Source: Bispira polyomma
Taxonomy: Eukaryota
Length of the DNA: 64,000 nucleotides
Direction: 5' to 3'
NCBI GenBank assembly: GCA_965649765.1
Contig: OZ287756.1
Coordinates: 43,462,001-43,526,000 of the forward strand
Shown: positions 8,059-53,750 of the stretch, one piece after another
Position numbering within the stretch: the stretch's first letter is position 1
Layout: each line of letters opens with the position of its first letter
Translations under genes and position numbers: made by a program
The notes under the pieces: model-generated
Databases searched by the model: none
The model's input: only the letters and a program-made list of their open reading frames with translations
Told to the model about the DNA's origin: nothing

Positions 8059-8970
8059 TCAAACAAAGTCCAGAGTATTTGCTCTTCTTATCCTCTTAAC
8101 TATGTTCTTCCTTGACTTAAACACTGGTACAGCTTTACTGTTGGGTGCATCTGATGTTTCCCTTATGTCATAAGCAGGCTCTACATCAAGACACTTATTA
8201 TCTGCACTCGTTTTACTGTCCTTTTTAACATGATGAAGTCTAGGTGATTTCCTCATAATGCCATCCTTTCTGACCCTCATTGTTTTCTTTCTGTCACTGG
8301 TGATCTCATTTTCCACTGACTCGCATGTAAACATGCCATCATATCCCCTACTAGAATCTTTACTACATTGCCGTTCACTGCCACGAGTATACCTTATTTG
8401 GAGATTATCCTTTCCGGTAGTGATGTCACCAATTTCAGTGTTGACATCATCGCCACTTTGAATGGATGTTATAGTATACACACCACTAGTAGTTGCATGT
8501 GAAGATTGTGCTCTAGTTGACTCTAAACTAATGACTTCAATATCTGGGCTGTCCTGTGCATCTTTAGATGTCAGTCTATGGTTAGAATGCTGTGTCTGCC
8601 AATTTAGTACCTTCTGATAACAGAGTCCATAGTCACTGACACCATGAGGTGAATAAACTACATTGGCCTCTTTTGCTGAACCTCTGCTGGCATGTATTTG
8701 CCTATGTTTTACAGTAGGAGCAAACTGCTTACTGTGGTCATTTACGACATCCTCTCCATGTCCAGGACTTACACTGACTCTGTTGACAAGGGATTCTCGG
8801 TGTTTGCTGCTATTTGAGGATGTTTCTTTTACTGTTAAATTGGTGCAGTATTTGATTATGGCCAGCATTAACATATCCATAATGTACTCCAGAAACTCGA
8901 AGGTTGTTATGAATGAGCAACCAAGCCAAAGGCAAAGGTTAGTGCCCACATTGCCCCAGTACTGAATAAG
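8059..8970 (-). CDS. DEG/ENaC exon 16: TM2, selectivity filter and ~260-aa cytoplasmic tail
   Basis: LIQYWGNVGTNLCLWLGCSFITTFEFLEY... open to the stop codon, ending RRANTLDFV*. Confidence 0.92.
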   Translation of the reverse strand, partial: LIQYWGNVGTNLCLWLGCSFITTFEFLEYIMDMLMLAIIKYCTNLTVKETSSNSSKHRESLVNRVSVSPGHGEDVVNDHSKQFAPTVKHRQIHASRGSAKEANVVYSPHGVSDYGLCYQKVLNWQTQHSNHRLTSKDAQDSPDIEVISLESTRAQSSHATTSGVYTITSIQSGDDVNTEIGDITTGKDNLQIRYTRGSERQCSKDSSRGYDGMFTCESVENEITSDRKKTMRVRKDGIMRKSPRLHHVKKDSKTSADNKCLDVEPAYDIRETSDAPNSKAVPVFKSRKNIVKRIRRANTLDFV

Positions 8971-14900: not shown

Positions 14901-17900
14901 ATGGCAGCGGAATCTAGGCATATCCCATAATCCCCAGACAGTCTGGATACACTGATCTGGAAAGGAAAGTATAGAAGTCATTTGTAAAGACAATTATGGC
15001 TGTGTTTTTTTGTTGTTCTAATTTATTGGCATTTTGTCTGTAGGGGTTATTTATAATATAGAACAGCCATATTATATTGCATCATTCAAGATATGCTGTT
15101 GTGGTGTGTTTGTTTACAATAATATTATTTATTATTATCATTGGAGATATGTTATTCTTCTTTAGTTTTAACCACAAAATGGTGAAAATGAATTAACTGT
15201 TATGCAGGTTATTATTTTAACCAAAGAAAACTATTATTACTATTACTGATCATGTCATTTGTCATACTTTTCATTTTAACAAAAAATTTAAAAAATATAT
15301 ATAAAGGTAATCAAGGATGTTACAATACGATAACTGATTCAATTAAAGGTAGTGACTTTTGTGTTCTATCAGGAAAAGGTCATGTATATTTTAATCCTTA
15401 CGATGCACGAACAAGCTATCCAGATCACCAAACCTGTCACTTTAAGGTACTGACTTTAACTTCTAACAGAATTTGAATAGTGAATCCTAGGTAAGCAAAT
15501 TTATGTGATCCCTGTGGTCTAGTAATTGGAGTGTTGGTCTGATGACAGAAGTTTTTGGTTCTATTCCCGATACTGACCGCTAGTTTCATTTGGTGAGATA
15601 ACATCCTTGGGTAAGATGTGACTACAAGTTTGCCTAGTGGCTCAGATAATATTTTAAAATGGTGGTCACCCTGTCACTGAGCACTAACTTCAGTGGCAGA
15701 ATAAAGATCCTTGGGGATGTTTTTAAAATGTCATCCTTAAGTTAGCCTCTGCACCCATAGTGGCAGCCCCTGAGTAAGCGCATTTACAAGGACACAGTGT
15801 TCTGTAAGTGCGCTATAACAAATGTCCTATTTCATATAAATTATAAGCTGTCAATACAATTTAAAGTTATCTTTGTTCAAAACTCTGATATGTAGGTAGT
15901 TTTATCACAATACGATATTTTAATGAGGCTCAAAACAGACAATCAGTTGTTTAAGACACGTTGTCCCTAAATAGAGGCAGTAAGAAAATGAAGCATAAAT
16001 AAAGAGTATTTTGATAGACAGCCATGCTATACGTTCCACTACCTTATTTTAAATTAGGGTTTATAATCTGATATGGCACCCAATGATGTCTCATCTGACT
16101 TGACAATTAACACCACAACCTAGGTTCTTCCAACTGTTCACTCTCAGTTCTGGAGTATGCATATGACACCCATTAGTGACCAAGTACATATTTAAACACC
16201 TGGATGCAGAAAGACCAGGCAGTATCTTCAGACTTTCAGTTTTAATACAGATTAAGTATATATTAAGTATTGTATCTTGTTCGTCAGACTATTTACCATA
16301 TACTAAATATAATTTATCGCACATTTGATTTTACCAGCCCAGGAAGAAAAAGGTTTCGCTGTGACATTTATATTCTACCTTTTTGATGCTGATCGAGGTG
16401 AGATGTCCCGGTAACACCAGATAGCCCTCATCAGCAGGGAATGGCATTCTGGACTGAGGGTGTATAGTCACTGAGACACCTGCTCCCTGACTCACACCTG
16501 CCAAGTACTCGTCTTGTTGAATGTTGAGGAGTAACTCCAGTCCTGGACAAAAAATAGTGGCAAAACATTTTTATTGGTTTAGACTAAGTCACATGACTCT
16601 ACCCTGAGTATATGAGAAACATAGTCAGCTTTCATTGGTTTAGACATGATCACATGACTACTCTGAGTAAATAAAAAAACCCTGATGTGTCATTGGTTTG
16701 GACTTAGTCACATAACTCTACCCGAGTATATGAGAAACACCCTCAGCTTTCATTAGTTCGAACATGGTCACATGACAACCTTAAATATGTAAGAGAACCA
16801 CTGATTGCATTGGCTTTAGAGAATCAATAGACTCCAGCCTTAAAGGTTGAGAAAAGCCCTTGGTTTGCATTATTTTAGGGAGTCATGAGCATATGAGAAA
16901 AACCCTAAATTGTCAGTGAAAAAGATATAATAATTAATAAAATGTGTGCAACAAAACATTTTAAATATTTATAACTTGTATCTACACATTGCGCAAGATA
17001 TTGAGTTTTAATGAATATGTATATCATGCTGCACAAAACAGTTTAACTGTATATTTATTTTATCTTAAGCAGTTTAACTTTTGTGAATATTTCATCCTTA
17101 GAAAGTCTTTAAACTATGTATCTCTGGTGAACAGTACATCCATTATTTTACTGTCACCATTGTTCAGATGTCTTCGTTTTATCACATCTAATCATACAAA
17201 CCTAAACTGCTACCAGTTCTAGACGAGGTGTAAAAAGGCCTAGAAATGTTCCAGTTCCAGCCAGAGTTGAACACATAACAGTTGCCATAGAGGGAATCAA
17301 ACAAATAGCCAAAATCTCTGAAACATATGAATCAAACCAGTAAAACTAAAACTTATAAATTTTAGCAACAAATAATATGCTTTGCGTACCTGTATGATAT
17401 GTTTGAACATTCAAACATGGGAGTCCCATTATTTCAATGCTTTTCATGATAACACTGACTCACATCAACTCAAATATTATGATTATTATGCATTTTCAAC
17501 ACGCTTTATTGATGCATGTTCTAAAGCACAACAGCAAAATCAGTGATCGAATTGTGAAGTCCATGGGCATAGCAAGGTCGTAAGGAATGATGTGGGGGAA
17601 TACAAGAGTGAAACTAAGGTGGGTAGGCAAGGTAAAAAAGATAGGTTTTGAGCTTTTTCCTAAAATCAAAAAGTGTATCTACTGATCTGAGGTCAACTGG
17701 GAAACTGTTCCATAACAAGAGAGTTGCAATAAAAAAATATCCGGATCCCACCTTCCTGGTGGGTCTAACCGAAGACAATTAAAATAATATTAGAATAATT
17801 TATTTAAGAATATATATTAAAATTTATTTAAGAATATTAGCATAAAATCTATGTACATTTGTGTTGTCTCCATCTTATCTACACCTATCTCAACTACAAC

Positions 17901-20900
17901 TGAGACTCTTGCTTATATATCAGTTTCCATATTTCTTTCCAAAATAAATAATAGAAAACGTCAAGCTTCTTGAATACAACCCTAAGTCTAGACTTCCTTT
18001 TAGCTAATCCCGACGTTGGCCGATTTATTGAAATCCGAGCCGACATCATTTTTGTTGAAAAATTGGGATGACCTTTTGACTTTTTTGTCCTTGATCGATA
18101 ACATCTGATGGGGAATCAGATATCTGCCGACATCGGATCAGATCCGATGCAAATGTGTTGAAGGAAGCACTTCCTAACACATACAGTGATGGAAATATTC
18201 GAGCAAAATATGCTGAAGGGAAGCCTAGGCTTAATGTTGAATTTAAATATTTGGTTGCAGCTACAATGGTTTCTAAATATACAGGGATTTTTACATAGCT
18301 TTTTCTAGACCCTTTGTTTGAACTGTACTTTCACCACCAATGCAGAGGCAGTTGCCACTTTGGTATATGCTTTAATAGTGTGTGCAAAGAAAAAAACTAG
18401 ATGAGGAACAATTAGAACATCCAAGGTTGTTGTTAGTAGGCAATTGTGTGTACAAGGATGTCATCCCACCAAAGAACCTAGTGGAATTAGTAGGAGTTGA
18501 ACCAGAGACCTTCCACATACCAGACCACCATCAACCGGTTAACCATACCAACTCCCTATCCACTAGGCCACAGTAGACCATAATTGTATTGATTTGAGAC
18601 CAAACGTGTTGAACCCCAAACTTAACTAAACCAAACTTAACTAAATCAAACTTAATTAAACCTCTTTCAGAGTTCAGATTAAGTTTTAATAAAGTTTGGT
18701 TTTACATCACTTTCAATAGCTTTAGGTCATATCACAACGGCCAATTTTAACAGTGGAGAAAACCACCAACCAATTGCAAATACCTGAAAAATACTAACGT
18801 TTGTTGACATTCCTTGCCCTGAAATCCACAGTAGAGTACAAACTCGCTGTAGGTGTAACCCATCTCCCTCTTAATCTCGTCCTCTTCATCAGCTAGTTCC
18901 TCTAGAAAGTCTGACTGCTTCCTGAAGTCTTCTCTCAAGGGCTCTTCTCTGGTGTCAGTAATATAACCACAGTCATATGACTGGTTAAATGTCATGTGAT
19001 TTACCTCTCACTTTTTAATGTAGAAATAGGGGTACATTCTAACAGAAAGATGATTTAGTAAATAATCTCTCATAGAATCCTTAGTACATCCGTCCCAATG
19101 TACGTTATAACTGTTTATCAGTAAAACAAGCAATAATTAGAACATTTAATAATGTACTTTAAACCTGTCATTACACTAAAATAGAACACATAAAATCATC
19201 ATCATGTGAATTAAATAATATACAATTCAAACATTTAAGATCTCTAGTTTTTAATTTTATTCCAATCTCAAGTTTGGTTAGTTTTGCTGGCCAATCGATA
19301 GTTTTTTGGTGTCACAAGAAACGGAGGAGGGGTAGTGGGCTATTTGCCACTAGAATGATGATTACCTGAAGACATCACGTTCCACATTTGCTGTTCCAGT
19401 AGTATGTGACTCTGTTGTGTTTTCAGCAATGACTGGTGTGGTTTCAGGTTCTGTATCACATTATCGTTACGTGAATTTGAATGTATTTTAAGTTTTACAT
19501 CACTTTCAACAGCTTTGTTCATATTGCGACGGCCAGTTTAGTGGTGAGGAAAATTAGTGTTGAACCACTGTAAACCACCTATCGACACCAAGTACCTGAC
19601 AAACTTTCTCACATAAGAAAGGATCCTGTGGGATTTAATCCTCAGAGAGGAGAGACCTGTGATTTTAAAGCAGACACTTATAAAAACTAGGCCACCGCGG
19701 CCCATATTTATATATATATATATATATGTTACAAAGTACTAGGAGTTCGACAATGTCAAAAAGTAAAACAAAATTCTGAATCCTCTCTTCTACCAGTAGC
19801 CATTGCAAAATATTATGTACTCTTCGCTGTGCATGTTCCATACTGTACTAAAGTTTATGGAAATTGGTTTAGCAGTGGTTTTATAATCCTGATGACAAAC
19901 CAACCAATCAAACAAGGCATGTGGCAAAAACATAACCTAATTGGCACAGGTAAGTCTTGTTAATTACCTGGCTTTTATTTTTATATTTCCACAGGTTTAC
20001 TGATTCTAATGTTGCGTCTTAGGTGATGCCTAGCATCAATAAGGTGCATTAAAAATGTACAATACAATACAATAATACAAGTAGATTCTATTATTCGAAT
20101 ATATTTGGAGAGATAGATTTGCTCCCAATAATAGGAGGTTCACAATTTAGAAAAGTCATTTTAGTATCAAATAATGGAAATTTGTAACAATGAAAATATG
20201 TTCCAAAATTGAAATATTCGGATAATTCAGAAGTTTGGATAATAGAGCTTTCATTGTAAGTAAAACATATACTGTTTATTCTATATCAGTAACACATATT
20301 TATTCACTGAACAAAAAATATTTCACTGCCAAAATATGCAGGAATAAGGAGTTTCTTTTGTACACACTTGTTGCAATGTATTTAAGATATATTACATACT
20401 ATGTGATCACCTATGGGCATCCCCAAGCCCATGTTGCAGCACCAACCCCATGGAACAATTTACCAGCCCCAAAAAATCCCAGGAAACCCTATCTGGGTAT
20501 GTTTGTAATGCATTCCCGTGTCATGGATTCGTATCTTTGTACTGTCAAGTATGTCGGAAAGTTGGCAGTAGACTTGCTGAAGGCCCACAGTTTGCAGAGC
20601 AGAAAACTTTGACCAACTATCCTACTCCCTGCTTTCCTCCACCAGTGAACTGCCACTGTTACCCAGGAATGTTCATTCAGTATAGTGGAATACAACTCAT
20701 TTAGTGGCGTAAGGGGTTAAACTTAAAATATAACTAAGCATAGCATTCAGTGCTCACCCAATGTTGACTGGCACACAAAACTATAGTCATCTGAACAGGG
20801 TCTGGTGTTCCAGGTTCCTTGTCTATTGATAATCACACAGTTAGAGGAAGTACCTGAAACATCAACATCATTTGAATTGAATTCAACACTAAAAGCTCTT

Positions 20901-21441
20901 CTTATAATATCTATTCTGGTTATCTGGGTAGGGTAATTCCCTTTATGTTTTTGCAATAACCAAGTTACAATAAATTCAAATACCCTATCCAGATAACCGG
21001 AATAGATACAATAAATATAGTGTCATTTTATAAATAGGTTATTGTAGAAATAAATTCCCTGAGTGTGTACTTTATTAGAGATTAAATGACAGCTTTACTG
21101 GCAGAATAATGAGCGAGGGTTGACAGGCCCCGAGTGCAATATGGCGGGAGACAGTCCTTTAATCTCCAATAAAATAAAGGTCGAGGAATTTACTTCTATT
21201 ATAAAGGCTGGTAATAGTATATTTTAAAGCAAATAATAAGATATTTTAAAACATACTGTAAACAATTTTTGTTGTATCACTTCTTTTTTGCGAATTGTGC
21301 ACTGACGGCTTTATGGTTGGCTGCGCACTTCCGGTTTTAATAATGTACAGTTGACACTTTGATATGACAAAATGTCGCCCCTTTTGACATGCATCACTCA
21401 TTTGTTGACTTTGCTCACTAGATATTGTTATTATGTAAATA

Positions 21442-21484
<43 letters not shown>

Positions 21485-24400
21485 TTTTGATATATCAAAA
21501 AGATGTAAAATATAGATGACTCTGGTTCATAAGCTGCTACATTAGACCCATACATCTGCATTGTAATTGCAATGATGACAGACAATAAATATTATAAGAA
21601 TAAAAAATACCGGAAGGCCTGAGTGCAACCCCGCAGATTGTTTAAAATTAGTATAAAACACAAGTTTAAGTATTTTATTCCTACTCTAACATGATAAAAC
21701 ATTACTTTTGATTAAAAGGACAAAGACAACTTGTTACTACTCCATAGACGGTTTCATGTTGTGGCTGTTCCATCATATAAACGTATGTCAACTCAAATTG
21801 CAAAACAAAAGCCAAAAATGCCAAATATTTAATAAAAACTCAAAAATATGGTGAGAAAGCTTATTTTATAACGATTACTGTGCTTTTTATTTCATTAAAA
21901 TCCATCGAGAAATAGCTCAGATATTTAAGTTTAAATACGAAAGAGTATCAGGGAGATTCATGGAACATCGTAAATAACATACCGTACATTGTCTACAGTG
22001 TTTTATACAGAATTTATACATTGTGCAAAAGACGTGATCATGGGTGTTGCGCAGCTTACCATTTTAGAATATTGATTAAAGTTATACTGATCAGCAAATA
22101 AACTACCACAGCCCAAAGAAGTTTTTATATAGCTATTCTACATGGTATCTGATTTCATCATTGCTAAAACTTATAGGTTCATGTGTAAATCAAATGTAAT
22201 AGGTAAATTTATTTACTTTTTGTAGCAACTAGTTTGGAGGAGTACAAAAGTCTCTGCTATCTTGATTTATCAACTCAGTATATCGATATATCGACTTTGG
22301 TATCAGGATTCAGCAACTTACTATCTCAATAAATCAATGCTATCTGAGATTGGAAGCAGATGTTTGGCCCTTTTTCCATTACCTCCATTGGGTTCCTGAT
22401 CCTCCAACCTCCAGTTAGACCAATCCAAACCTGAGCCATCAACCCATTCCCATTGACCTTCTACACTCAGGTCAGTGAGGCCAGAGTAAAACTCCCTGTC
22501 AACAAGTGTATAAAACACAGCATCATAGTTTTTTTGTGTATTTTATATCATTAGCCTTCTTCAAAAAACAAATTATTTTTCAACCCATCATATACATGTG
22601 GTCCCAAGAAGGTTGTGTTGGTGTACACAGAGACAATTAGGCCAGGTAAGTTTGGAAAGACAGGTTGTATGTCTGTGACAGTCTGTTGTAGCGCATATTT
22701 GCAGGAAGATGAAAGTCGCTAAGAATTTTATTTAAACGGCTACGTTTAGAGAGATTATATTTTGAGCGGCTTAAGTGGCGAGACAAAAGGTTTATATCCA
22801 GTCATAAGGGTGGTTTATTTTGAAGTCCTGTTTTTTCGGCTGCTGTCATGATTGTTTAGCTTGTAATTGTTACATATAAGGACATTGTGGTATGTTAAAT
22901 CACTCTGCTAAAGTGATTTATTTATAGATTTAAGGAAACCCTAAGCTTCTAGAAGCTAGTTCTATTTTGTTTCTGTTGTTATTGAAGTTGTTTTAATCTG
23001 GAACGTTCTAGGAATTGTTGTTTACATTTTCTAGCAGTGGTATATATAAGGGTTGACAGCCTGGCCACAGACTAGAGTTTATTAAGTTGGTGTGCTATAT
23101 GAACTGCTATACTGTGAAACATTATATTTCTTTTCCTTTGGATATAAACTGATTATTATATACATTTTGTGGTGATCTCATTGGAGCGAACTGGATATAA
23201 AGTTGTGGATCTACCAGAGATCGGATTTGCTGCATATTGGATATCGTTTACGTCCTGGACTGGTTAGCTTAGTTGTGCAGACTCTCTGGATAAATACATT
23301 TTGTGTTCGTGGACACCGAACGGATAACAGGATACAGGCATTGTGTGGATACCGAGCAGATCTCAAGACAGATTGCTGGATACAGTGGACAAACTTGTTT
23401 AATTGTTATTTACGTGGACAGGACTGTGGTCAGGTCAGATTGGTTTCATTATTGTATTATTGTATGAACTATTAAGAGTATCTCAGTTGACTGTAATTGT
23501 AATTGGTTTTTTTGTTAAATTAATTTGTTAAGTAAAACTTTTTGTCTTTTCCTGTTACAACTTGAAAGCAACCGGTAATTGCTACCACGCTTGCTCCCGT
23601 GACCGTAACAGTAATGCTTGAGTGGAAGATGAGTTGTGCTGTGTTCCGGTTGGTTATTGAAAGGATAGTTGCACATGGTCCAATGAATAAGTGACTGCTT
23701 TGAAATTAATGGGTGTTGGGATTATAGTCTCATTTGGTACATCATTTTATTATCCTTTTTAGTTTTTGTATACCAAGGTAATGTTGCTCTGCTATAATAT
23801 GTTATGTAGAAGTTTTCTATTCTGGTCATGTATGTAAAAGTGAATAGACCTTTTTTAATGGGATATATCAAACTAAGCTATGATATATTCCCTAGTCATT
23901 TATTATTGGAATAGTTGGGTATTTATTTTAATTCGTTTAACTATGGTACCAGTACTCTTGTAAAGTTAAATGATAAGGTAATGACTTCAAACAAAGAAAA
24001 ACATCATTGTATGCAAGTGTTTTGTGCCGCCTTTGAGATGCAGCCCAAGTGTTGGGCGTCTTGCTGTCAGTGTAGATTTACTCTGTGACTGGTATGTTCC
24101 ATAACTGAAAAAACAATATGTAAGACATTCTTTTACTCTGCTCGACGCAACTCTTAGTCAAGCCCAAACCCCTGTGAGAAGGTCTAGCAATATGTCTAAT
24201 ATATAAAGTATTTATACTCATACATACAAAACAATAAATTTGGACCAACCAGTTTATCTCAAATTACACATTACATTCATACAGTTGATATGATATCATA
24301 GATTTTTGACATGCCAAATTGATTGTAGGCATCTTCTAAATTGTCAGTTGTTAAAATCGTAGTCCATTTCCAATGTAAATTCATGATCATTGACATGGAC

Positions 24401-27400
24401 GAGTAAGATTTCTACGGATGAAGAGATAGGCCTTAAGGTTGCTTCTGAAACCAGAGAAGGTTTTTTGGGATATTATATTAGCTGATTAATTGTTCCATGT
24501 TGTTGGTGCTGCAGCAAAGAAGACGTAGTATCCAATCCATTTACTAGTTCTGGTATCAGAGACTAAGATTCTGTTTTAAGCCTGCTGCAAGACAGCAATA
24601 AGGCAAGATATGGGTGCTTGCAAAAGTTGACAGCTTAAGATAGAATGGGCGTGAACATGATGCAGTACTTGATAGGTAGCCCATGGAGCCTTTTGAGAAG
24701 AGGCACACACTGACGCATAATCCCACACAACTCTGCACAAGTGATTCTGGATAGACTGTAACATTTGCAATCGGTATTTTTGCAGTGCAACAAGTAGAGA
24801 ATTGCAGTAGTTCTAACGACTAATTCATTGAAGGTACACTCGATTTAGAGTAACCCTGATCAGAATTTTTTGTTATAACTAGGATTGCACTTGGGTATTC
24901 AAGAAAATTATGATTATTATTATTATTATTAATTTTTAACGTGCTTTATTGATGCTAGACATCTTCTAAAGCACAACAGCAGAATCATTAATCCAATCAT
25001 TAAGTCCATGGACCTAGCTCAGCCGTAAGGAAGGAAGTGGGAGCATGCACGAAAGAAGCTAAGGTGGGTAGGCTAGATTAAAAAGATAGGTTTTAAGCTT
25101 TTTCCTAAAACCATGTGTCAACGCTCTGAATCCCACCTTCCTGATGGGTCTGACCAAAGAAACTGAGAGTCTGTTGCCTATCTTATGGTTACTATATGTG
25201 AGAGGGGAAGCAAGGTAGCGCGGGCTGTTGAGTGACTACAGCCTTGAAAGTGGCAACGTGAATCTTGAACAAAATACGAGAAAGAATAGGCAGCCAGTGT
25301 AATTCGAGGTAAGGAGTGACGTCCGTGCGAGAACCCAGGTGAAAAATAACCCTGCATAAGTAGTTTTGTATGGACTGGAGCTTTTTAATGTGAGACTTGT
25401 TTGCTTCGTACAGAAGAGAGTTGCAGTAGTCGAGGCAGCTCACAAGGGCATTAGCCACAGTTATTGCTCTGTCCATTAAGAGGTGGTTTCATATTCTCTT
25501 GATGTCGTGTCTATAGTAAAAGCAGGAGCGACAGAGGTTGGCACTATGAGTGTCGTACGAAAAAGCTGAATCAAACGTGACACCCAGATTTTTGGCATTT
25601 TCGGAAGGTAGTATGTCTTTTCCCAGCAGAGAGATGTGAAACAAAGATTCTAAGAGTTCACTGTCTTTCTTGTACCCTTTGAGAATGAATTCAGTTTTGT
25701 CCGGGTTAAGTTTTAGTTTGGAGTAGGTCATCCATGCCTGGATAGCGGACAGACAGTCTGCAAGTGGTTCAATATTTGTATTTGCGTTTTGTGGGTTGAC
25801 AGTGAGATAGACTTGAGTGTCATCTGCATACATGTGATGTTTTATATTATGATTATTGATGACAGTGCTGAGAGGATGTGTATAAAGGGTGAAAAGTAGA
25901 GAGCCAAGGACAGACCCCTGGGGTAATCTGTGTGGTAGGTTTATAGAAGATGACAGATGACCATCTAATTGAATTTTTTGTGCCCTAAGATTAAGGTAGG
26001 ATCTGATCCATTTAAGTACACTGTCTTTTATACCACACCACTGTTTGAGAGTGTCGAAAGCTGCCGAGATCCAGAAGGGTGAGGGACACCGTGTCATTGC
26101 GGTCCAGTGCAAGATTGGTATCATTGCTGATAGAAAATAGGGCACTTTCTGTAGAGTGGAATTTTCTGTAAGCAGACTAGTGGTAATTTTCAATGTTTTG
26201 TCTATTTAGGTGGTCCGAAATTTGTTGTGCTACAGCTTTCTCAATAACTTTTGAGACGAAGCCGGTCTGTAGTTTTTGAGCTGGTATTTATCAAGCCGTT
26301 GTTTTTTATCAAGGGAGTTACTTTTGTAGTCTTGAAACAGATGGGAAAAACACCATCCCGAAGAGAAAAATTTAATATGTTGGTTGTGGGTGTGACAAAA
26401 ATGTCAAGGCATTGATTTAAAATAACTGCTGGGATAGGATCTAATTAACAAGATTTAATAGGATAGGATTTCATGAGTTTTAGAACATCCTGCTCTGACA
26501 GTGTACTGAAATGGAACAGGTTAGAAACCTTATATCCTGGGGTTGCAGGACTAAAGTGAGTCATTGATAAAAAACCGTTACGAATTTTCCAAATTTTTCA
26601 GTTAAAAATGTAAAGCAGTGATTTATGGAGAGAAATTTCTCAGATGCTCAGAATTTTGTTTATAGAGGCCCGTAAGCTTTTGGGATTGTTCTGATTTTGA
26701 CTGATGAAAATGTCATAATGTTGCTTTTTGGCCTCAGATATTAGCCTGTTGTAATTCTTTGTGGCGATACGGTAACGGCTTCTGTCAAAGGAGGATTTAG
26801 TACGTCGCCATTGACGCTCAAGTTGGCATTTGCGTCTTTTGGCCTCTGTAATGGCGGTGTTGGTGCATTCATGGGGGTTAGTTGGGGGAAGGGTTTTAGA
26901 TACTCAAGGCGCATGTTTATCAAGGATAGTAGAAAGGCAGTGATTGTATTGTAAGCTAAGGCTATCAGCATTTTTGCAAGGATTTTTTAAGAAATTTGTT
27001 TCCTGGATGTCGTCTCTAAATTTGTTCATATTGATTTTTCTGATGTTTCTGTATTTTATCACATGAGCTTTTTGTGAGGCAGGTACTGGTAAATTTAAAT
27101 AGGCAAAGGTTGCTAGGTAATCCGAAATCAAATCAGTTACCCCTGAGTCAGGAGAAAAAGGTAGATTGGCATTTTGAATATGACAAAAAGGTCAGATAAA
27201 AGCGAGTATAAGTTTGAAATCAATACAGACCATAATCGCACACTTGCTCCATTGCATACTGTAACATTTATGATGCTATTGAACAGGTCCAAGGACCAGA
27301 TGGTTTTCTTATAGCGTTATCACTTTACTTAACAAGCTAATGAAAGGTATTATTGGTGTAATTAATCACCCAGTTCCAATGAAGCCATGCTTATCTAGGA

Positions 27401-30400
27401 ATGTGTTGACCTCTGGTGACGTCATATGTAGCAGGGTTCCCCCTCCTGTTTGACACTCTGCCAGAGCCTCTGTAAATGTGTGGACATTTGTCACCATCCA
27501 GTAACACAGGCTAGTAGAGGGAAGGATGGTGGTGGTACAGGGACTAGAGACTGAAAGTAAAAAGGATAAATACAGTATAGTAGAAGTAGTTTAGAATGAG
27601 CAAAACACCCTGCTGATTATGGGTTGGTTGCTTTGGCAACCATGCTGGGGTGGTTGCTATGGTAATGTGACAAATGTGCGACAAATTGTCACCAATTCAA
27701 ATGGTAGATGGTAAACTGTGTAACTTTGTGTGACAAATTGTCACAAGGTATGCGACAAATTGTTGCAAGCTGTGCGACAAATTGTCGCAGGGATTAGTGT
27801 GCGGATTTGTATGCACCTGAGAATTTGTGACAATTTGTTGCAAGCAGTGTGATTGATTGATGCAAGTTATGCGACAAATTGTCGCATGTGTATTGCCAAT
27901 GTGCGTTGCCGATGTGTGCTACTGATGTGCAAAGACACATATGTATTGATTTTGGGGATATCTCAGTGACTAGTGTGGTGATTTTGATTTTGTAAAGATC
28001 ATTAGAAAACACAGGTCAAGGGCTACAAGCAGGTATGTATTATATATCTGTGCATTGAATAATTATTGAGATATAATTTTTTTTATTTAAAAAATGAATG
28101 AATGTGGTCCTCTATAAAGGGTTGTTTATATACCGACTTTTCAGACCTCAAGGCAAGACAGTGTTAAAAATCCGTGCCTGTGAGCCATTTTCTGTTCATT
28201 TATACCAAATTATTTCAGACTTCAGGGAATGACCCATATTACTAGCTGCAAAGCAAAACCTAGGATGAATTTTACAGGTCACGTGACTGTATTAAGGTGA
28301 AGGTTGGCCGGCATAAAGAATGAAAAAATTAAATGTTCATTCAAACTGTTTATTTAAACATTATCTTAACATTCAATTTACATTCAAAGTTTATTTTCTT
28401 TGACAATAATATTAACATTGTTGATAACATTTATTTTCTTTGATAATAGTATCTTTCTTCATCTTCCAACACATTGGCTCTCAGTCTCATATGCTCAGGA
28501 GTTTCTTGCTTAAGATCGATGAACAAATAGCTGTAGGGTCCCAAGGACATCAGTCTGTCATACACAAGGTCCATATACTCTGGATCTTTGAGGTCCATCT
28601 GTCTGGCTAAATGTTAAATCTGACTGGCATCTCGTGGATTCTTGAACAGTACCATATAATGTGTAGTCAAACTGATTGTTCTCTGGTATTTACTTTGGTG
28701 AAACACATTTTGGGTCACCACAATGACAGAAATGTTGTGGTGATGACTGTCATTAGTAAACAACTCAGTCACTCCACTTTTCAAGCGATCCATCATGTCA
28801 TCTAAAATAAGGAAGCAGGACTCTAATTCCACCAAATAACCTTTAATGGCGGTTGATATATCTGTTTATCTTTAACTTGCAATAACTTTTTTAAAAATGT
28901 GGTTTTACCACTTCCTGGTGGGCCAGCCACCAAACATGTAAATGGATGTATTATTTTAGGTAGCGCTACCACGTTATAGCCATCCTAATCTACTCTAAGA
29001 GTTGGATATGTATCTGTTGCTCTGACCTTCTGTGGAGGTGTGGAGATGTAGAGGTTCCACATATGGAGGTGTGGAGATGTGGAGGTTCCAAATGTGGAGG
29101 TGCAGAGATGTAGAGGTTCCACATGTGGAGGTGTGGAGATATGGAGGCTCCACATGTGGAGGTGTGGAGGTTCCACATGTGGAGGTGTGGAAATGTGGAG
29201 ATACCACATGTGGAAGTTTCATATGTGGTGGTAGAGAAATGGCTGATGTGGTGAAACCATTTTGCTAAACATAAACCACTCAACTAAAATGAATATATAT
29301 GTTAAACAAAAACAAAACCATCATTACATTAAAATTACAATAATCACTTAAGTATAATCAAAAGAAAGTAAATACTTTAACAAGTAATACTCTTTTAGAC
29401 AATGTGAATTAGGCATTTTTTAAAGATTTTTTTAGTGTCATTTAATAAATTCAGAAATAAAGATCAGTTAGAAATGCTAAACCAAAAAATTTCAACACTT
29501 TAAACAATAACCACTTAACTAAAAAAATTTAAAAAAAAACAAAAACCAAACACTGTCACAACAAACACTTAACTGTTATAAAGATAAATGTTTTTTCTCA
29601 TTATTATTACATTAAATCGGTAAAAACTAGATGCTAAAATACTAAATGCAAAAACAAAATATTTAGTCCCCACTAACATTTTTTTTATATGATCAATTAA
29701 TAATTTATAAGTAATTCTATAAAGTACTCTGCAACTGAACATCATTGTAAGTACATTTTCTGGCAAAATGTTAAAAAACTGTGTTTACTCTTTGAAGAGA
29801 GGTGGTAACCCATAGGAGTCGAAGTACAGCTCATCTCCTTGCTCGTTGATACTAAGCACTACCCAGTGGGTTCCTTATTTTGAGGACAATCTGTGTTGCA
29901 GATAAATACACATCTCGCTTTTGGACATCTGAGTTGGTCTCTGGAAAACACACCAACATCCCATTTTGTAGGCTTGAAAGTTTGTTGTAGATTTTGAAAT
30001 TCTGCTGTATTCATCGTACAGTGTGAAATTGGTCACAACGTCTTTGTAACGATCAATTTCAATTGTGTTTTCAAATTCTCAAAACCCAACAATATTCATT
30101 CTGTTAAAGCTTTCTTAAAATGGAGCTCTAGAGCAACTGTGCCAGTTTTTCTGAAATTGACATAACCTCCCCCTTCTTCTAAATCGGGTGGCAAATCAAA
30201 ACATATCAAAATGTAACCCTTTTTATATTCTTCTCTGTCAATGTGATTCCCTTCGTCCTGATAGATGGTCCCCATGCCGGAAAATAGAGTCATGTAGCAA
30301 CTCATGTAGTCATCTGTGTCGAAGTCAGGTTGCAGTTCCTTGCCAGGAAATAGTGTTCCACCTACACTGAGAATGTTCCACATCATACTGGAATGGATTT

Positions 30401-33400
30401 GTTTTGTAGGTTCCGTTGATGCCACTGTTCTTTAGAAATCCCAACACAATGCGTTTAGGAATTTGACCAGAATACAGGTTTTCTTCAGTATGAGTTTTGG
30501 TTCCTATTCCCACTAATTCACCAATTCTCCTCTGGTGATTGGATATTTAGCAGTTCCTAGTTCTAGAGCCTTCACGTGTGCAGCCTGGATGACAGAGCTG
30601 ATCTCTACTTTTCTGATTATCATTTTGACACTTTCTGATTTCACTTTGAAGTTGGCAGCATCAATTGGGCTGATGAGACAGAACTTGTCCTTACTTCTGG
30701 TTAAACGTAACTTCTTTGGGGTGTAATTCAGCAGGTAACGGTCTTAAAACTTCAGGTCCAAGTGCATTTTTCCCATCATGTCGACCAGGTTACTCTTTTT
30801 GGCTAGTTCCTTTCTTTTTTTGTATCCATTGTTGGTGTCATCCAGAGAAAAGTTGTTGGTGCCTTTGTACCACATTGATGCAGTCAGTTGACTTTCTTTA
30901 CTCTCTGTACCAAAACTTAGCAGAGCTTCTATACAAGCCTTATAAGGGTAGGTGTTGTTGGAGGTGGCTACCAAAGTGTCTTTTAATGTGACATCTATCT
31001 GACTGAATAGGCGAGCAGCTAAAAATTCACTGGGGCTACATCTGCTGCATCAGCTAAATTGGTGCAGTCCTGGTTTACAATTTTGGCTTTAACGTAAATG
31101 AAACTGTTTTTCAGACCAATGTACTCAGAATCTAATTCAGCTATTTTAAATTCAATGGTATCACTGCTGTCTTTCACCACTGTCACAGGTCCATATTCGA
31201 CCCATTTTCCCTCTTCAATGCTGGTCTGAGTGAGGGGTATAGCAAACAGATCTAACTCTGTTTAGGGCACTCGCAAGACAAGGGGTGTATCAGAGGCATG
31301 GTTTTGTAGTATATATCTCTTCTTCTCCTTTTTCTGGAAGGTCCTTTCTCTTTGAACACTTTGGATGAAATGACGGGTCTTGCCCGAGGGGGTCCCTTTC
31401 ATCCCTTTCCAAGTAATCCTGTGCCAAACCTACTCCTGCGGTCAAGGCCTTCTTACCCAATGATTTTTCCAGTGCAATGGCTCCTTTCTTTAACAGAGGT
31501 GGAGCTACTCGAACAAGCCCTTTAAACAAGATACTCAACCTGTGACCCCTCCGATATCATGAACTTTGAAATTCTGATAGTCCGATTCCAACTTGACTTG
31601 TATAATATTCATTGTATGCCTTATGTGTAGAATTATTGCAGAGGTAGCCTTTGTGTTTCATTTTTGATGAAAGTGGAGTGCCACCAATAACTTTCCACCA
31701 ACAAATGGAATGATTTCATCTGTGTCGTTCTTTATGTTGCTTTTCACAGACCCAAAGACTTCCTCAGGGATATGGAATACTTGATTGTACGATGTGGTGA
31801 TAATATGCCCTTTCTGGATAGGAACAATTCTAAGAAGAGGAACTTTAGCATCTCCCACTGCCACAGGTTCGATTAAATCACAATAGATGTATAGATTGCG
31901 TGTTTCATCTTGAATATCAAATGGGTACTTCGATTTTCCATCTCCGGGCAAAAAGGGACCGGTTTGGTAAACCCTGGAATTTCACTTAATCTTTTGGAAA
32001 GGGTTAGTTTGGGTTCCACCTGTGGTTCATTAGGTGTATTTCTTGTAATCTGAAGTCTTGACTCTGCTCCTAACATTTTTTTAAATATCTGATCAAGTCT
32101 TCCATGTTGTTGTAAATGCCTTCTGGAATAGAAATTTCCTTGTCACCCACTTGGACAAATTGTTCTGAGGGGACATTATGCCATGTTTTTGTACACTAAA
32201 TTTTCATAAGTCCCACTTCCCATTTGCCAGACAATTCGCAGGGTTGAGCCAGGGGAATAATATACTATCCTGCAGTATTCCCTACATGCTTTGTATAACT
32301 CGGTAAATATACATAGAGGTCTTTCATGTTGCAGTGTTTACAGCAGTGTTCACATTAAACTGAATGCATCATCAAAAGTGTAAGCCTTTTTATACACTCT
32401 CCCATTTATACTTCTTCAATTTTGGTTCCTTTTCTGGTGGTTCCAGCTCTGGTTCCATTTCTGGTTCCGTTTCTAGGAACATTTCTGGTTCAATCTCTGG
32501 TGACTGAAAATGAGGTCCCATACCTAACAATGAGGCTGGAATATTAGAATTTTGTAGCAAAATAAGGCCAGCCAGTAGGCATTTTTCTTTTTTTCCTTGA
32601 GTTCGAATGGCTGTGTTAATTAAATCAGTAATATGTGATCCAGTAATAGGCTGATTTTCATCTGTCAAAATTTCACCATCTGTCATTCCAACTTAAAGTG
32701 CCTTTTAACTATTGATAGAGACTCCGTAAAGATGTAGGCAGTCTTATTTTCAGGTCATCTTCTAGATCTTCTGTTTTAACCTGTGTTTCCAAAAGTTTTT
32801 CGCCAGGGCGAAATACTGTATCTTTTTGTTGTTGATCATTGGCTTTGAGCCGGGTCATTGACTGATTGTACAGTTTCATTTTTTTCTGACTGTTCCATAT
32901 TGGTATTTTCTAACAGGTCAGCCATATCCTTTTCTAATCTCACCATGGCTGTAGCGGCTGTCCCTACTTTATTTACACAGGCCATGCTACCTAATAAAGC
33001 TTTGGGAATAACAACCATTTTAATATATTTGTTCATCGTTTAAATAATCCAATAAATTTTTCAGCATTTGGGGTGTAAGAGTCCCTAAAATAGGAGCTTG
33101 TAAGGCTGGCAAGAATTTCCCTGTTTGTAAGATATCCTTTTTTCTCTAATCAGAGGTTTGTTTCTTCCTCAACTCTCGCAGTTCTTCTTTGTACTTTCCT
33201 AACTTTTTCTTTTCTGTTAATCCCAGTGGAATATTTCCTTCAGGTAGATTGTGAGCACACTCAACGAAAGAGTGTAGGAGAGCTTTGTCTGCACCACGTA
33301 TAACATATTTTGTTGCTTTGGAATCACCTTTGGCCAAAATCTGTAAAATATATTTATTCTTTTTTCACATCAGACATGTTGACTGCATGACATTGGTCAG

Positions 33401-36400
33401 TAAAATAAAGAACAATACTGATGTTCCCTTCTATTTATACTGATATCTTGTGACTTCTTTGGCAGGTATCCACAAGTCATATTTTGGTGGCCATTGTAAC
33501 CATAGTACCAAAAACTTCTTTTTGACGCCCTTTAAATTTTTGGCTCTTAAGAATTTTTTCCACTTTATAATACTCGCTGGCAACGGCTTTCTATAACCCT
33601 TCTTCGTAAAAAGTTCCTTCAATGGATTCGCCTGCATAAATTTTCACTTTGTAGGTAGGATAGCTTTGAGACCTCAGTCTCTATTTATTATTTTAAAAAG
33701 TTCACCACTCTATCTCTGATCGCATTCTCTACTAAATGTTTTTCTGCCATGTGATATTCTGACAAGATCCCCAACATTAAATTAAAACTTTTTTTTCTTG
33801 AAATTTTTCCTTGATGGCTCAAGTTGTTTGCCGTTACTTTGGCTGGGGCCATTTTTTTAGAACGAGGTACATTCTGGTTGTAAGCATCGGTAATATCTTG
33901 CAACACTTTGATGTACCTATAGGATTGTTGGTAAGTAAAGTATTTGTAAATTTTTAATGGTCTTAATAGCTCTTTCAGCACAATTTGTGGGGCCGCCGTG
34001 GCCTAGTGGTTAGCAAGCATTGCGCTTCACAATCACTGGTCTCTCACCTCTGGGCGGCGTGAGTTTGAATCCCGTCGATGCTTATGTGGGAAAGGTGGTA
34101 GTTCCTTACTGTTGGCCGCTTGTTTCAGTGCAGAACCTAGATCAACTGTATGCAGTGTTTCTTCCAGCGTTTCCAACTACCCGTCCCAATATAACATAAA
34201 TAGGTACTAGAGTGGACGTTAAATATCCCAATTTAAAAAAAAAAAAAAAATTCAGCGTAATTTGCATTGACTTCATTTTGCGTTGCAAAATGTCGAACAG
34301 AATGTGTTTTAAATTACTGCTGCACTTTATAACCTGTAAGCTTGGTCCCTTTACGGACCGCATGGTTTCTGGTGTCCTTTCCTTGAAAACCAATGAGAAA
34401 GCACAAACAACTTCATCTCCAGATTTGTTCTTCAAAGGCACTGTCCACACATACCGTGAAAATATATCTATGGCTAACAGAACAAAATGGTCAATGTCAT
34501 TGTATTGGGCAATTTTGGTCATATCCATCAGGTCAACATCTCACTGCTGATCTATACTCCCTGCAATGACTTTTATTTTTTTAATAGTCCTTCTTGCAGG
34601 TTTGCAATAAGTCTCTTCTCCACTTAACCAGGATTTCACATCTGTTAGGGTTACAGAGCGGTCTTCTTTTATTGCAGCCTCAAAAAGCTTTTGGGGCCCA
34701 GAAAAACTAGCAGGATGGGCAGGATTAAAGTAAATTTAAGTAAGAAGTTTGTTCATTGTTTCTTTTGTATAGTGGGACTTGGCAGAGAATAACCCAGAGA
34801 TGAACTCAATAACTGCAACCAGACTTCTCGGTTGTGCTGATTAATCGTTGGAGCCACAAATTTCACTAACGATTTCTTACAGAAGTTATCCATTAGGAGT
34901 TATCCATTAGATTTTCAGTGCACAAATGACTTGAAATTATGTATGTTGCCTGTATATATACATTTCAGGACACAATAACTATTTTGAGCAGTGAACATAT
35001 CATGTGGACCATTATGTGTATTACCTGTTAATATGTATATTTCAGGAGTTTTTTAGGCATTGAAACATAACATGTGGATATTACTGAACCTCAAATTTAT
35101 TATTAATGGCTAAAACAGAAACATCAAATGTCGCACAACTTGCGACAATTTATCGCACACCTAGCAACAATTTGTTGCACAAATTTAAACAGGTTTACCC
35201 ATCTATCATTTAAATCTGCTACAATTTGTCGCACAGCTTGCGACAATTTGTCGCACAGTGTGCGACAATTTGTTGTACAGCTTGCATCAATGTTTAGCAT
35301 CACCATAGCAACCAACACCAAATCAGCAGGCTGTTCGGGGGTGTTTTGCTCACTCTATACTAATAGCAGAGCACACTAATTTTGTACATGAAGTGGGGAC
35401 TGGAAGTGAAAGGGACTCAAATTAGTAGAGGGGAGGGACATAGTGCAGGGGCTAGAGACTGGAATTAAAAGGGACTTATAACAGTAGAAGGGAAAGTTAT
35501 GGCAATAACCCCCCCCCCTTAAAAATACTAGAGAGTAAACGAGGTGTCACATATAAAAATTATTAATATTCACCTATATAATGGATGTACCTCTTTAATT
35601 TTACAATTATCTCACTTTACACCTATGTCTTGCCTCCCCTTGTCCTATTCTTATTCAGGTCATCTAGGCCCCACTTGGTCTATATATTGGCTCTCTACTT
35701 TTACTTCTAAAGCTATCTTACTCTACACCCATACCCTTACATTTCCTCTTCTTGATCTTATTTAGGTCATACAGCAGCTGTATACCTTTAGGTCTATAGC
35801 TATCTCATTCCAAACATATATTCAACCTCCCATCTTCCTCCTCCTCTGTCTGCAATATAAGTTATCCAGGCCACCTGTGACCTACTTAATAACTGTATAC
35901 CATTACGTCTACAGCTATCCAACTCCAACATCTACCATACCTCCCCTCCTCCTACCATCTTCCTCCTCTTCTGTCCCCAATCTAGGTCATCTAGGCACCA
36001 TGTGACCTAGATAACAGCTGCATACCTTTACTTCTACATTTATCTCATTTCACGCACATATATCCTACCTTGTCTATTCCTCCTTTGTCTCCAATCTAGG
36101 TCATACATGCACCATGTGACCTGTATAATAGCTGTATCCTTTTATTTCTATAGCTATCCCATTCCACATATCTACCATACCTTGCCTCTTCCTCCTTTGT
36201 CTCTGGTCTAGGTCTTCCAGGCACCATGTGACCTACATAATAGCTGCATACCTCTACTTCTATAGCTATCTCATTCTAGACATATACCATACCTGCCCTC
36301 TTCATCCTCCTCTTCTGTCTCCAATTCAGGTCATCCAGGCCCCACCTTGCCAGTAGGGTACTCAGCCTGGCACTGAGGTACAGTTTTGACTTCTTTACTG

Positions 36401-39400
36401 GGTTGACATTGCACACACTGATTGCTGGGAAGTCTAGTTCTCTATGTTGTGTCCACTCTATGTCCACAGTCACCTGACAGATGTAAATGCTTAGATTTTA
36501 GATTTAATATCAAGTGCAGCCAGATATTGTTTTCACTCTGAATGGGGTGCGGCCATGTTGGAAACTGCCAACATGTTGGAAATAATATGTAAATCTTTCA
36601 TGGATTGCTTTGAAACAATCAACCCGGTCAAATTGAAAATAATATCTAAGGCCTTCGAATGAAGGGTGCAAGGAAATCTTTCTAAAATTTGTTTTCTGTT
36701 CTTTAAACAACTGATAAAGACTGCTGGGACCCAAAATATAATATTTTATCAACAATTTAGATTAAATGGAACTAGCTCCATGGTTCAAAAGAAGTCGACG
36801 AAGCCAAGACACTTTAAGTCCTTAAATAAAGCAGTTGAGGTCTATCATTTTCAATCCTCCTTGTAAGTATCTCTGGGTCAATTGTTTTCTTTTGATTTTA
36901 TCCGGTTTACCATCCCAAATGAACTTATAAAAATATTTGTTCAGCTGCCATTCAATTCAATTTTAGGATTTGGAATAGTAATGAAGCGATGATAACATTT
37001 TAGTAAGATTATAGTTTTTAATACTGTGATTTTCCCTATTTGTGTTAAATACCGGCTCATCCAACTGTTCAAAAGTTTTTCTACTTTTATTAATACCAGT
37101 TTATAGTTGAGATCAACAACATTATCCAAGTCAACTGATAATAGTATTCCTAATAATTTTGCTGCCAACAGAAAATCAGTTGTGCCATCTAACATTAGGA
37201 TCGTGTCAGCAGCAAACTGTGTTAGCTTTAGTTCATTTTGACCAATTGTTATTACTTTAATACTTTTGTTTTGCTCAACCAGAATTAATATCTGTGCACA
37301 GAGAATAAATAAATATGGTGCTACTGGGTCTCCATGTCTGCAACCTTTTCAATCTTTATAAAATCAGACAATATACCACATTGCATCACAGTTGCCTTAA
37401 TATTTTTATGGAAAGTTTTAATCAAATGTATTATACTAATACCAAAACCTAAGAATTTTAATACTGAATATAGGAACCTCCATGAAACAGAATCAAAAAC
37501 TTTCTCAAAGTTAACAAGCATCAGAAGCCCTGGAATATTTAAATGCTCGGTAAACTGTATTATGCCGTATATTAAATGAGTGCAGCCACCTATTTAACAG
37601 CCGCTAATAAATCCTGACTGATTTTTTTATATAAGTTTTCGAAAAAACTTTTTTATTCTATTAGCAATGGCAGTAGAGCCAATTTTGTAAAAAACAGACA
37701 GTAAGGATATAGGACGCCAATTTTTTAAGAATTCTCTTGGTTTGTCACCCTTGTGTGGACAACTTATTTATGCATTGGCCTAATGAAATAGACATTTCTC
37801 CACTTTTGTAAGCATAGTTCAAAGCTCTGAGAATAAAAATTTTAGTTACTCCCAAAATACTTAAAAAAATTCCGCAGGAAAACCATCTATATCAGGACAT
37901 TTTCAATTTTTCATTGATTTTAGAACGTCACTAAGTCTGTTACCATCTAGAGGCCCTTCAAGTTCAAGTAATTCACTTTCTGATAATTGATTTATATTAT
38001 TGTTTTGAAATAATATTTTCAAAATTTATTTCAGTCAAAGATTAATCATTATTTTTAAATAATAATTAATAAAAGTTTTTTAGTTCTAATAAAATTTTGT
38101 TTTGATCTGTGATGATCTGACCATCTGATCTTAGTACATGTTTTACTGTTTTTTCAAGACAATATTTGGAGGGTTTCTCTCGGTCTTTTAACCATTGGGT
38201 CCTAGATCTTATAGCTATCCCTTTGACCTTTTCATCTCTTATTACTTGCAATTCTTTCTTTTTATCCTCAAACAGATCAAAATTACATAAATTACGTAAT
38301 CTTTTTCTAGCATTTCAATATCAGCCATGAGCTCTTTTTCTTTCGTATTCAAGCTCTTTTTTAACCTTGAAGCAAATTTTACCGTTTCACCTCTCATTTT
38401 TAGAAGCAATAATTCAAGGAATAGACAGGTCATTTATTATCAATTTCAAGTCTGTATCTGAGATCTTATCAAAGTTTTCAAAGTTATAAACTGGAACAGT
38501 GGACTCTTGCTTTTCAGTTTCTATTAATGTGTTTATCATCCTGAACAGTTAAACTTCCATACTCCTTTGCCTCTTTCATATTTGCAAAGAAACAGGTTTA
38601 ATTCAATTATTGAATGATCTATGCGATAGCCAGGCCTTATGTTATAGTCATTTATTAGATGTAGTAGTGAATTTGAAGCAATAAAATAATCTAACCACGC
38701 TTGCTGCATTTGAGTTTTCCTTCGCCATGTATATCTTTTACTATTTGGATGAAAGTATCGAAATGCGTCAGTCAAGCTACAAGCGTTTATCGTGTGGAGT
38801 AAAGAGTTGTGAGCTTTAGGGTTATTGATGTATTTATAGCTTCTAGTGTCAACTGAGGGTTCTAATGCTAAATTAAAATCGCCCCATATTATTATATAGT
38901 CCTGCTGACTTATAATGATCATTTCTTGAATGTTTTTATAGAAATCAGGTGAGTCTCTATTTGACGCGTAAATATTAATAATTTTAATGGAGAGATTACT
39001 TAACTCCAAATCAAGAGAGATAAGATTTCCACTGTCATCACTGAAGACTGATTGTATTTTATGTTCGAAATTGCCTTTAAGCAGAATTGCAAGCCCTCTT
39101 GCATTGGACCTTCGACCATTTAACATGCAATCGCCCCTCCAAATTTGTTTATTTGATTTCACATATGTGTCCAACAAATGTGTGTCTTGTAGACAAATTG
39201 TTCCTGCTCGCAAATTTTTTAAATAATGTAAAACATCTGTTCTTTTTAATGTCTCTTAAGCCTCGACAGTTTACTGACAACACCTTAAGATTATCTCCTA
39301 TAATGATATTTCTGAATGGTTCGATTCTCTATTAACAGCATTATGACATAATAAGAATTTACCTCAAAGTACAAACATTTGATGTGGTTTATTCCAGATA

Positions 39401-52722: not shown

Positions 52723-53750
52723 TTACCACGGGACTTCCCCCTCATTCATAAAAAAGTCCATTAACACGTCCCTCTGTTCTTTGGCCGCCCTGGATGGGTT
52801 TCTGTGGGTGGTCGGTTGACCTCCTACCAACTGCACCTCGGGTTCAGGTAGATCATCTTGTGGGTTGGGGTGCTCTAGTGCCGGGTTTTCACACCGGCTT
52901 CTCAGTATGTTATGTAATATCACACATGTCAATGTCAAATTTGAGGACACTTGAGGGTGCTGTTGCATCGTCATCAGTAATAGGCGGAAGCAGCTGGCGA
53001 AAATCCCAAAAGCGTTCTCCACCAAGTATTCCACGTCACGTCGAGACCCCTCAAACAGTGGTGCTGGTCTGGGCAGCCCAATGGATCCATCTTCTATCTT
53101 CTGCTTGAGCTCTGAGTGATTAAAAATTTGGCCATCGGAACAGGAACTACTACAGCCAATGTCCACCCAAATAAATCTGTAGTCTGCATTAACCAGGGTA
53201 AACAGGACAATGAAGTGGAAGCCTTTGTAGTTGTAAAATTCGCTCCCAGCCTTGGGAGGCTTCTTGATGGTCACGTGCTTCCCATTAATAGATCCAATAG
53301 CATGAGGGATATTCCACCTGTTCCTGTACACTTCTTCTATTTTCAGCACGTCTGCGGGGGTGGTTGGGCAGGCTAGATTTTCTTTCTCATATTCCCTAAT
53401 GATGGCCTTGCATACTTCTGGTATAAACTTGGTGATAGATGATTTCCCCACCCTGAACTGGTAGGACAGGGATCTGTAGCTCTCCCCATTGGCCAGGTGC
53501 CTCAAAATTACAGCCAGTTTCAGTCCAACATCCAAGGGCTTTCTGAACCAAGTTGTTTTTTCACATGGGGTGTTATCCTATCCTTGATTTCGTCAAATAT
53601 ATCAGGTGGTAGCCTGAAAAAATTCTTGTATGAGGCTGCATTCCCTTCCTGTAACTCCGGCACTAAGTTGGTGTAGTAGCCTAGGGCCTCTCTCTGACTG
53701 AATCAAGGCTTGACCCAGCAGATGGGTGACATATGTGGAAGTCTAATCTT
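52723..53750 (-). pseudogene. Harbinger (HARBI1-like) DDE transposase
   Basis: LRHLANGESYRSLSYQFRVG, GSINGKHV, YNYKGF, DGQIF, VENAFGI, CVILHN; first catalytic D appears as N, plus an internal deletion. Confidence 0.9.

Follow-up and report, generated by a model that had tools for sequence, protein, structure and literature searches.

A DEG/ENaC channel gene of Bispira polyomma with a C-type lectin-like domain in its finger region, apparently a conserved and so far undescribed variant of a known channel family

The stretch of Bispira polyomma DNA analyzed here (64,000 nucleotides of contig OZ287756.1, positions 43,462,001 to 43,526,000, without N; hereafter 'the window') carries on its minus strand a gene for a DEG/ENaC ion channel subunit, into whose extracellular finger region a C-type lectin-like domain (CTLD) is predicted to be built. 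The gene comprises 16 coding exons, starting with an ATG at 45378 and ending with a stop at 8059, whose lengths sum to a product of 919 amino acids. All 15 introns follow the GT-AG rule, and each exon is free of stops in the frame fixed by the adjacent exon. The gene was examined, profile-scanned and searched one exon at a time: individual exons were scanned against 24,736 Pfam models, and the alignments used as queries each held one window exon row, for the palm exon (alignment A2) or exon 3 (alignment A4).

Exons 3 to 7 are stop-free, each with a CAG acceptor and a GT donor, and join in phase to a finger exon at 18948-18799. Exon 3 (36293-36473) encodes the motif FPAISVCN and finger helix alpha1, followed by a polybasic, furin-like tract, and ends in phase 1; degenerate ~140 bp repeats that reuse its 3' end lie just inside the next intron (35600-36290, minus strand). 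Three exons then encode the CTLD: exon 4 (27370-27550, phase 1->2) contributes three cysteines, a CYW motif and helices 1 and 2; exon 5 (22383-22495, phase 2->1) the motifs GLTD..EG.W.W.DG and EPN; and exon 6 (20758-20853, phase 1->1) the motifs SNC and WNT and three cysteines, so that the domain has six (3+0+3 per exon), while the usual WIGL strand reads YSGL. Scanned apart, these exons match positions 3-34, 42-74 and 79-106 of the 107 in Lectin_C (E = 0.013, 0.0012 and 0.00012, respectively), the third above the gathering score. Because the three partial matches are ordered and colinear over 7 kb and come with intact splice sites and chained phases, they are not due to chance; the exons on either side match ASC. 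Exon 7 (19366-19450, phase 1->2) encodes a Thr/Glu-rich stalk of 27 amino acids (30% Ser+Thr, one N-glycosylation sequon) and is required for the frame, as exon 3 (ending in phase 1) and the finger exon (starting in phase 2) are incompatible on their own. CTLD and stalk sit between finger helices alpha1 and alpha2, giving the order: first transmembrane helix (TM1), alpha1, polybasic site, CTLD, Thr-rich stalk, alpha2, remaining channel. A search of the introns for second copies of any exon, or for further module exons, returned only transposon remnants.

A first-pass annotation of this DNA had proposed a channel with a lectin domain in its variable finger, and the coordinates and phases it gave (1->2->1->1, then 1->2 for the stalk exon) proved exact. 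Its six cysteines and its GLTD..EG.W.W.DG, EPN and WNT motifs are all present, the domain does lie in the finger, and the scan for ASC and Lectin_C that it suggested, made exon by exon, found Lectin_C covered from 3 to 106 with ASC matches on the flanks. To its exons we add an N-terminal exon with the HG motif, the TM1 exon and nine downstream exons. Exon 1 (45240-45378) holds the ATG, the cytosolic N-terminus and the re-entrant-loop motif STVHG (HG), and exon 2 (44728-44828) holds TM1, with a weak ASC match (profile 21-50) and TM1 matches in the related loci L005, L007, L009 and L010. Beyond the stalk, exon 8 (18799-18948) encodes finger helices alpha2/alpha3 with the motif C-x-F-x-G-x-x-C, and is 44-54% identical to its counterparts in CTLD-bearing relatives; it is followed by exon 9 (17202-17317; GNCY beta-strands), exon 10 (16379-16542; palm and beta-ball, ASC E = 1e-8), exon 11 (14859-14956; pre-thumb, YGIC), exon 12 (13875-14020; cysteine-rich thumb, ASC E = 8e-4), exon 13 (12486-12558; thumb end, CDCPQPC), the short exon 14 (11674-11731), with a WP motif at its end, and exon 15 (9644-9790; knuckle and last palm strand, ASC E = 0.004). 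Exon 16 (8059-8970) completes the gene with the second transmembrane helix (TM2), a GCS filter motif, a cytosolic tail of ~255 amino acids and the stop.

The channel exons contribute 14 ectodomain cysteines (1+2+1+1+5+4), and the gene shows the DEG/ENaC hallmarks of two transmembrane helices around a large ectodomain, the HG motif and FPAISVCN. The GCS filter aligns with TM2 of FaNaC and alpha-ENaC, albeit with the weak E-values of a short query. In the alignment the window TM2 reads G-T-N-L-C, where most members read G-G-Q-L-G, and is nearer to alpha-ENaC (G-S-Q-W-S). From ENaC mutagenesis, a cysteine at the last of those positions might reduce the affinity for amiloride, and partner subunits may be required. 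Overall, the window gene appears to code for a single intact subunit of a clade B, ENaC-like DEG/ENaC channel. Its tail (8059-8830, minus strand) is of low complexity and lacks a PY motif; the C-terminal residues -LDFV are a possible PDZ-binding end.

The search with exon 3 alone recovered P0011, a protein of 920 amino acids encoded by a single intron-free open reading frame (ORF) on a 31-kb animal contig of a metagenome assembly. Besides TM1, FPSVTVCN and the rest of the channel, it contains two furin-like sites, a CTLD (Lectin_C E = 1.3e-6) and a stalk rich in Thr; the insert (P0011:212-352) is predicted to fold as a CTLD (AlphaFold 2 predicted local distance difference test score 82.6), with Foldseek template-modeling scores of 0.56-0.69 to CD23, tetranectin and other CTLDs. 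Channel and CTLD share one ORF in four intronless relatives: P0011; its tandem neighbor with the same layout (L002:10934-13570); P0020, which already bears both Pfam labels as precomputed; and L085, with its two CTLDs (Lectin_C E = 4.8e-22, ASC E = 4.9e-78). Intron-free genes of this kind lie at L002:6564-13570, L003:303-3446 and L085:2118-5213, two of them in tandem, and are possibly retrocopies or mark lineages with intron loss. About eight further relatives are interrupted by introns and have CTLD exons at this same position. L006, from a marine biofilm metagenome, contains CTLD, stalk and channel exons with the window's intron phases 1-2-1-1-2, its first and third lectin exons being identified by motif and by their match to the window exons, not by Pfam; the intron after its third CTLD exon (L006:1612) apparently has a GC donor (GC-AG). 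L094 has the CTLD and downstream channel exons. CTLD exons also follow the exon-3 equivalent in L004, L005 (two), L013, L045, L059/L065, L061/L055 and, weakly, L019, whose contigs stop before the remaining channel.

Compared exon by exon, the window channel exons score best against L006, L094, P0011, P0020 and L002b, and the module-less proteins of Branchiostoma and Haliotis score below these. On the palm-exon tree, the seven CTLD-bearing rows all group together (89/94, under the starred threshold); the exon-3 tree is unresolved, as were most of the exon-sized trees built here. Homologue protein searches recovered only P0011, P0020, P0021 and P0022, while the known paralogue L002:10934-13570 escaped them; recall was thus low, and the lack of named orthologues says little. 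A further candidate, P0001, was dropped as a repeat artefact, and none of the relatives' contigs looked human by matched peptides. A separate locus, L074, holds at least four tandem DEG/ENaC genes, apparently module-less, in 20 kb. Judged from these sequences, the CTLD in the channel is a family design across many animals and not a one-off. The literature searched describes no CTLD- or CUB-bearing DEG/ENaC, although its coverage was incomplete and automatic database annotations may exist; the CTLD-bearing form is apparently a real, conserved, so far undescribed variant of a known channel family.

A polybasic site ahead of the CTLD is conserved in this family. In the window, RQKR and RMKR stand at the very end of exon 3, immediately ahead of the CTLD. 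All 14 rows of alignment A4 show a basic tract after alpha1, 13 of them with a match to R-x-K/R-R (P0013 has RFKR), and a motif scan found R-x-K/R-R in 60 of 77 loci. When P0011 is aligned with human gamma-ENaC, the RKRR of the latter falls on the P0011 basic tract. The GRIP domain of ENaC is located between alpha1 and alpha2 (PMC10178586), a corner where ligand sites, protease sites and proposed matrix-tether sites are found in the DEG/ENaC superfamily (PMC11026163). CTLD and stalk occupy exactly the position of this protease-regulated domain. P0011 and L002b have two separated furin-like sites, both ahead of the CTLD; the window motifs are adjacent and none follows the CTLD, so that there is one cut locus and no excisable inhibitory tract between two cleavage sites.

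The content of this slot varies. L005 and L085 have two CTLDs, and in L090 a Thr-rich stalk exon runs into the finger with no CTLD found ahead of it. In L012, two exons (18420-18600 and 18896-19051) with phase-1 outer boundaries make up a complete CUB domain, on the same strand as, and 8 kb past, an exon-3 equivalent that ends in a polybasic tract; L012 is possibly a CUB-bearing DEG/ENaC. Wherever readable, outer module boundaries are in phase 1, and internal introns vary. Together with the tandem CTLDs and the apparent CUB swap, these boundaries fit exon shuffling into one permissive site, as had been suggested from the phase 1-1 module of the window gene. The first-pass annotation was also right to place the CTLD within the channel polypeptide, which the one-ORF relatives support, and the search for the same architecture that it recommended was productive; it had missed the polybasic site, the equivalence to GRIP and the existence of a family that spans several species and varies in its modules.

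The same does not hold for the sugar site. Aligned with mannose-binding protein C in the PDB, the window CTLD has Ser for Glu (ENC vs SNC) and Thr for Asp (WND vs WNT), as the first-pass annotation had cautioned. Two of the five ligands of Ca2+ site 2 are thereby lost, and with them a canonical mannose-type site; the domain retains EPN, both site-1 residues of GLTD..E (Asp and Glu) and the Asn of WND. None of 12 homologous CTLDs (that of L004 partly visible) has EPN or QPD, and none has WND; the EPN position reads EPD (twice), QPS, EPS, DPD, YPT (twice), NPK, FPA, HPI or TAV. The canonical site is present in 0 of 13 CTLDs, the window included, and CTLD identity averages ~27% across the family. 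A family function in mannose/GlcNAc sensing, of which EPN had been taken as the sign, is not supported, and sugar specificity is not the conserved feature. What is conserved, as far as alignment can tell, is the fold, the preceding polybasic cut site and the following stalk.

The closest solved structures to P0011 are those of human ENaC beta, gamma and alpha. In the scores of P0011, the vertebrate ENaC alpha/beta/gamma subunits are its best structural relatives (190, 171 and 169 bits), ahead of the FaNaC type (161 and 109) and ASIC/BASIC (at most 124). The HG motif, 14 ectodomain cysteines, the furin-type site after alpha1 and an insert between alpha1 and alpha2 are common to vertebrate ENaC and the window gene. 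Where vertebrate ENaC has a short GRIP segment with inhibitory peptides, however, the window gene has a folded CTLD of 130 amino acids and a mucin-like stalk, and, unlike ENaC, a single cut locus. FaNaC, WaNaC and MGIC are clade B peptide-gated channels of molluscs and annelids, with a ligand site formed from finger helices alpha1-alpha3 (PMC11026163, PMC9234716). Cloned Platynereis ENaC4-7 are 508-614 amino acids long (bioRxiv 10.1101/261990), compared with 878-1047 in the CTLD-bearing family. The nearest named matches of the P0011 core are the 'ENaC gamma-like' proteins P0021 (Branchiostoma, 37%) and P0022 (Haliotis, 32%); both have a Thr/Ser-rich finger loop, and P0022 a basic tract, but neither has a CTLD, and both fall outside the CTLD-bearing group of the palm-exon tree (89/94, not starred).

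Two other systems invite comparison. C. elegans EGAS-1 to -4 fuse a DEG/ENaC to extracellular EGF modules and gave no current in oocytes (PMC10424705). They carry EGF repeats, not a CTLD or CUB domain, and no EGF match was found in the window exons scanned, P0011 or L085, so the EGAS layout is absent from these. The EGAS repeats are not known to be inserted at this finger position. In polycystin-1, the CTL domain that regulates a cation channel belongs to a cleaved ectodomain (PMC7728438). This is a functional analogy only, since the channel family is unrelated; a fragment is released there, whereas in the window gene the predicted cut lies N-terminal to the CTLD, which would stay tethered.

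Mobile-element remnants surround the coding exons. The intron between exons 3 and 4 contains stop-broken fragments of a large DNA element (28600-34550) with a weak integrase match (rve, E = 0.005), pieces of which we take to resemble Polinton/Maverick ATPase and capsid genes. Remnants of long interspersed nuclear element (LINE)-type endonuclease/reverse transcriptase lie in three introns (25190-27190, 36940-39330 and 41006-43606), the last being a plus-strand ORF of 866 amino acids. Intron 2 also holds a minus-strand ORF (43495-44010) that matches a UPF0029/IMPACT-like domain (E = 3e-7) and probably belongs to a mobile element. Upstream of the gene are a Harbinger-like DDE transposase fragment (52723-53535, minus strand), an HSP70 fragment (59716-60060, plus strand) and pol ORFs of a gypsy-type long terminal repeat retrotransposon (61421-63998, minus strand).

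The reading that we favor, at somewhat under even odds (roughly 45%), is that the product is an ENaC-like channel processed by furin, in which a tethered CTLD would attach to a partner (a protein, a glycoprotein or matrix) and relay this binding, or tension, to the finger. Furin-type convertases would cut the polybasic tract, as at the aligned gamma-ENaC position; the N-terminal piece would remain held by the palm sheet and a beta-ball disulfide, so that the CTLD would become a free head at the new N-terminus, tethered to alpha2 by a probably O-glycosylated stalk. This head would bind an extracellular protein, glycoprotein, mucus or matrix partner, in most members without a canonical Ca2+/monosaccharide site; a protein, glycoprotein or matrix component is more likely as its ligand than a monosaccharide. 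Binding or tension on up to three heads might then move the finger-thumb wedge, which controls gating elsewhere in the superfamily, and so change the Na+ current. Such a protein would be a channel that works through a tethered ligand or as a tethered mechanosensor, and whose adhesion-type head can be exchanged.

Several points weigh against this reading. Cleavage at the polybasic tract is predicted from motifs. Stalk lengths range from 27 amino acids in the window to ~400 in L085. If long and floppy, a stalk may fail to relay force or binding, in which case the head could serve anchoring only. Exons 4-6 total 390 nucleotides (130 amino acids), and their in-frame skipping in some transcripts is possible. 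The L012 contig ends before further channel exons, leaving its CUB domain linked to the channel by strand, position and phase. With EPN and the Asn of WND kept, the window CTLD may bind sugar weakly in a Ca2+-dependent manner, and Ca2+-independent sugar binding occurs in CTLDs such as SPL-1, a Foldseek match of the P0011 insert.

It seems less likely that the CTLD does no more than anchor or localize the channel, be it on matrix, on mucus, on cuticle or on a partner cell, and that gating, as in vertebrate ENaC, depends on proteolysis, on ions or on some other stimulus. Stalks that are of low complexity, can be long and differ greatly in length, an apparently stalk-only L090, CTLDs of low mutual identity, and the paired furin-like sites of P0011 and L002b, which flank an excisable segment as in alpha-ENaC, speak for anchoring; the head is nevertheless joined to finger helix alpha2, at a gating-relevant corner (PMC11026163), and the window has a short stalk and a single cut locus. 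We consider it unlikely that the head is a Ca2+-dependent mannose/GlcNAc-type lectin through which the channel would directly sense glycans of microbes or of mucus: the best PDB matches of exons 5 and 6 include mannose receptor 2, Mincle and mannose-binding protein, in keeping with the retained EPN, site-1 residues and WN, but the site-2 replacements in the window and the missing EPN or QPD in its homologues speak against such a sensor. Still less probable is an intramolecular or inter-subunit ligand, in which the CTLD docks on the channel after cleavage, as an inhibitor (like GRIP) or as an agonist (like the CTL domain of polycystin-1). The CTLD does hold the GRIP position right behind the cut site (PMC10178586), and a CTL domain is an intrinsic agonist of a channel complex (PMC7728438), but polycystins are an unrelated family, and low conservation and replacement by tandem CTLDs, a CUB domain or nothing argue against a fixed docking surface.

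Finally, despite the in-frame length of exons 4-6 and one weak signal-peptide-like phase-1 piece at 28430-28382 (whose hydrophobic core is short and which lies within transposon debris), it is very improbable that the lectin exons are always skipped or form a nested lectin gene, either of which the first-pass annotation had named as refuting its proposal: intronless homologues hold both parts in one ORF, L006 shares the intron phases, the window channel exons are closest to CTLD-bearing relatives, the donors of the lectin and stalk exons are ordinary, and only through the stalk exon does exon 3 reach the finger exon in frame.

Known DEG/ENaC stimuli include protons, peptides, proteases, bile acids and force. 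A wider proposal, which we regard as possible but tentative, is that the furin-opened finger slot defines an undescribed sub-family of receptor-channels, accepting exchangeable modules (one or two CTLDs, or a CUB domain), in which the binding of a macromolecule, such as a microbial glycan, mucus, matrix or a protein on a cell surface, directly gates Na+ influx. If true, this would be a macromolecule-gated channel or one with a built-in tether, a gating class not yet shown for DEG/ENaCs. Tests of the tether model of mechanosensitive DEG/ENaCs have been difficult, as the link outside the cell is a separate component and poorly defined (PMC10148893). In the present family, the channel gene itself encodes a candidate for such a tether or for a ligand-binding head; this head lends itself to clean in-frame deletion, and nature provides forms with no CTLD, with one, with two, or with a CUB domain. 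Tethered and macromolecule gating would thereby become directly testable, and the furin/GRIP site of ENaC may be an old, evolvable regulatory slot. Even if the head only anchors, the domain architecture is apparently unreported.

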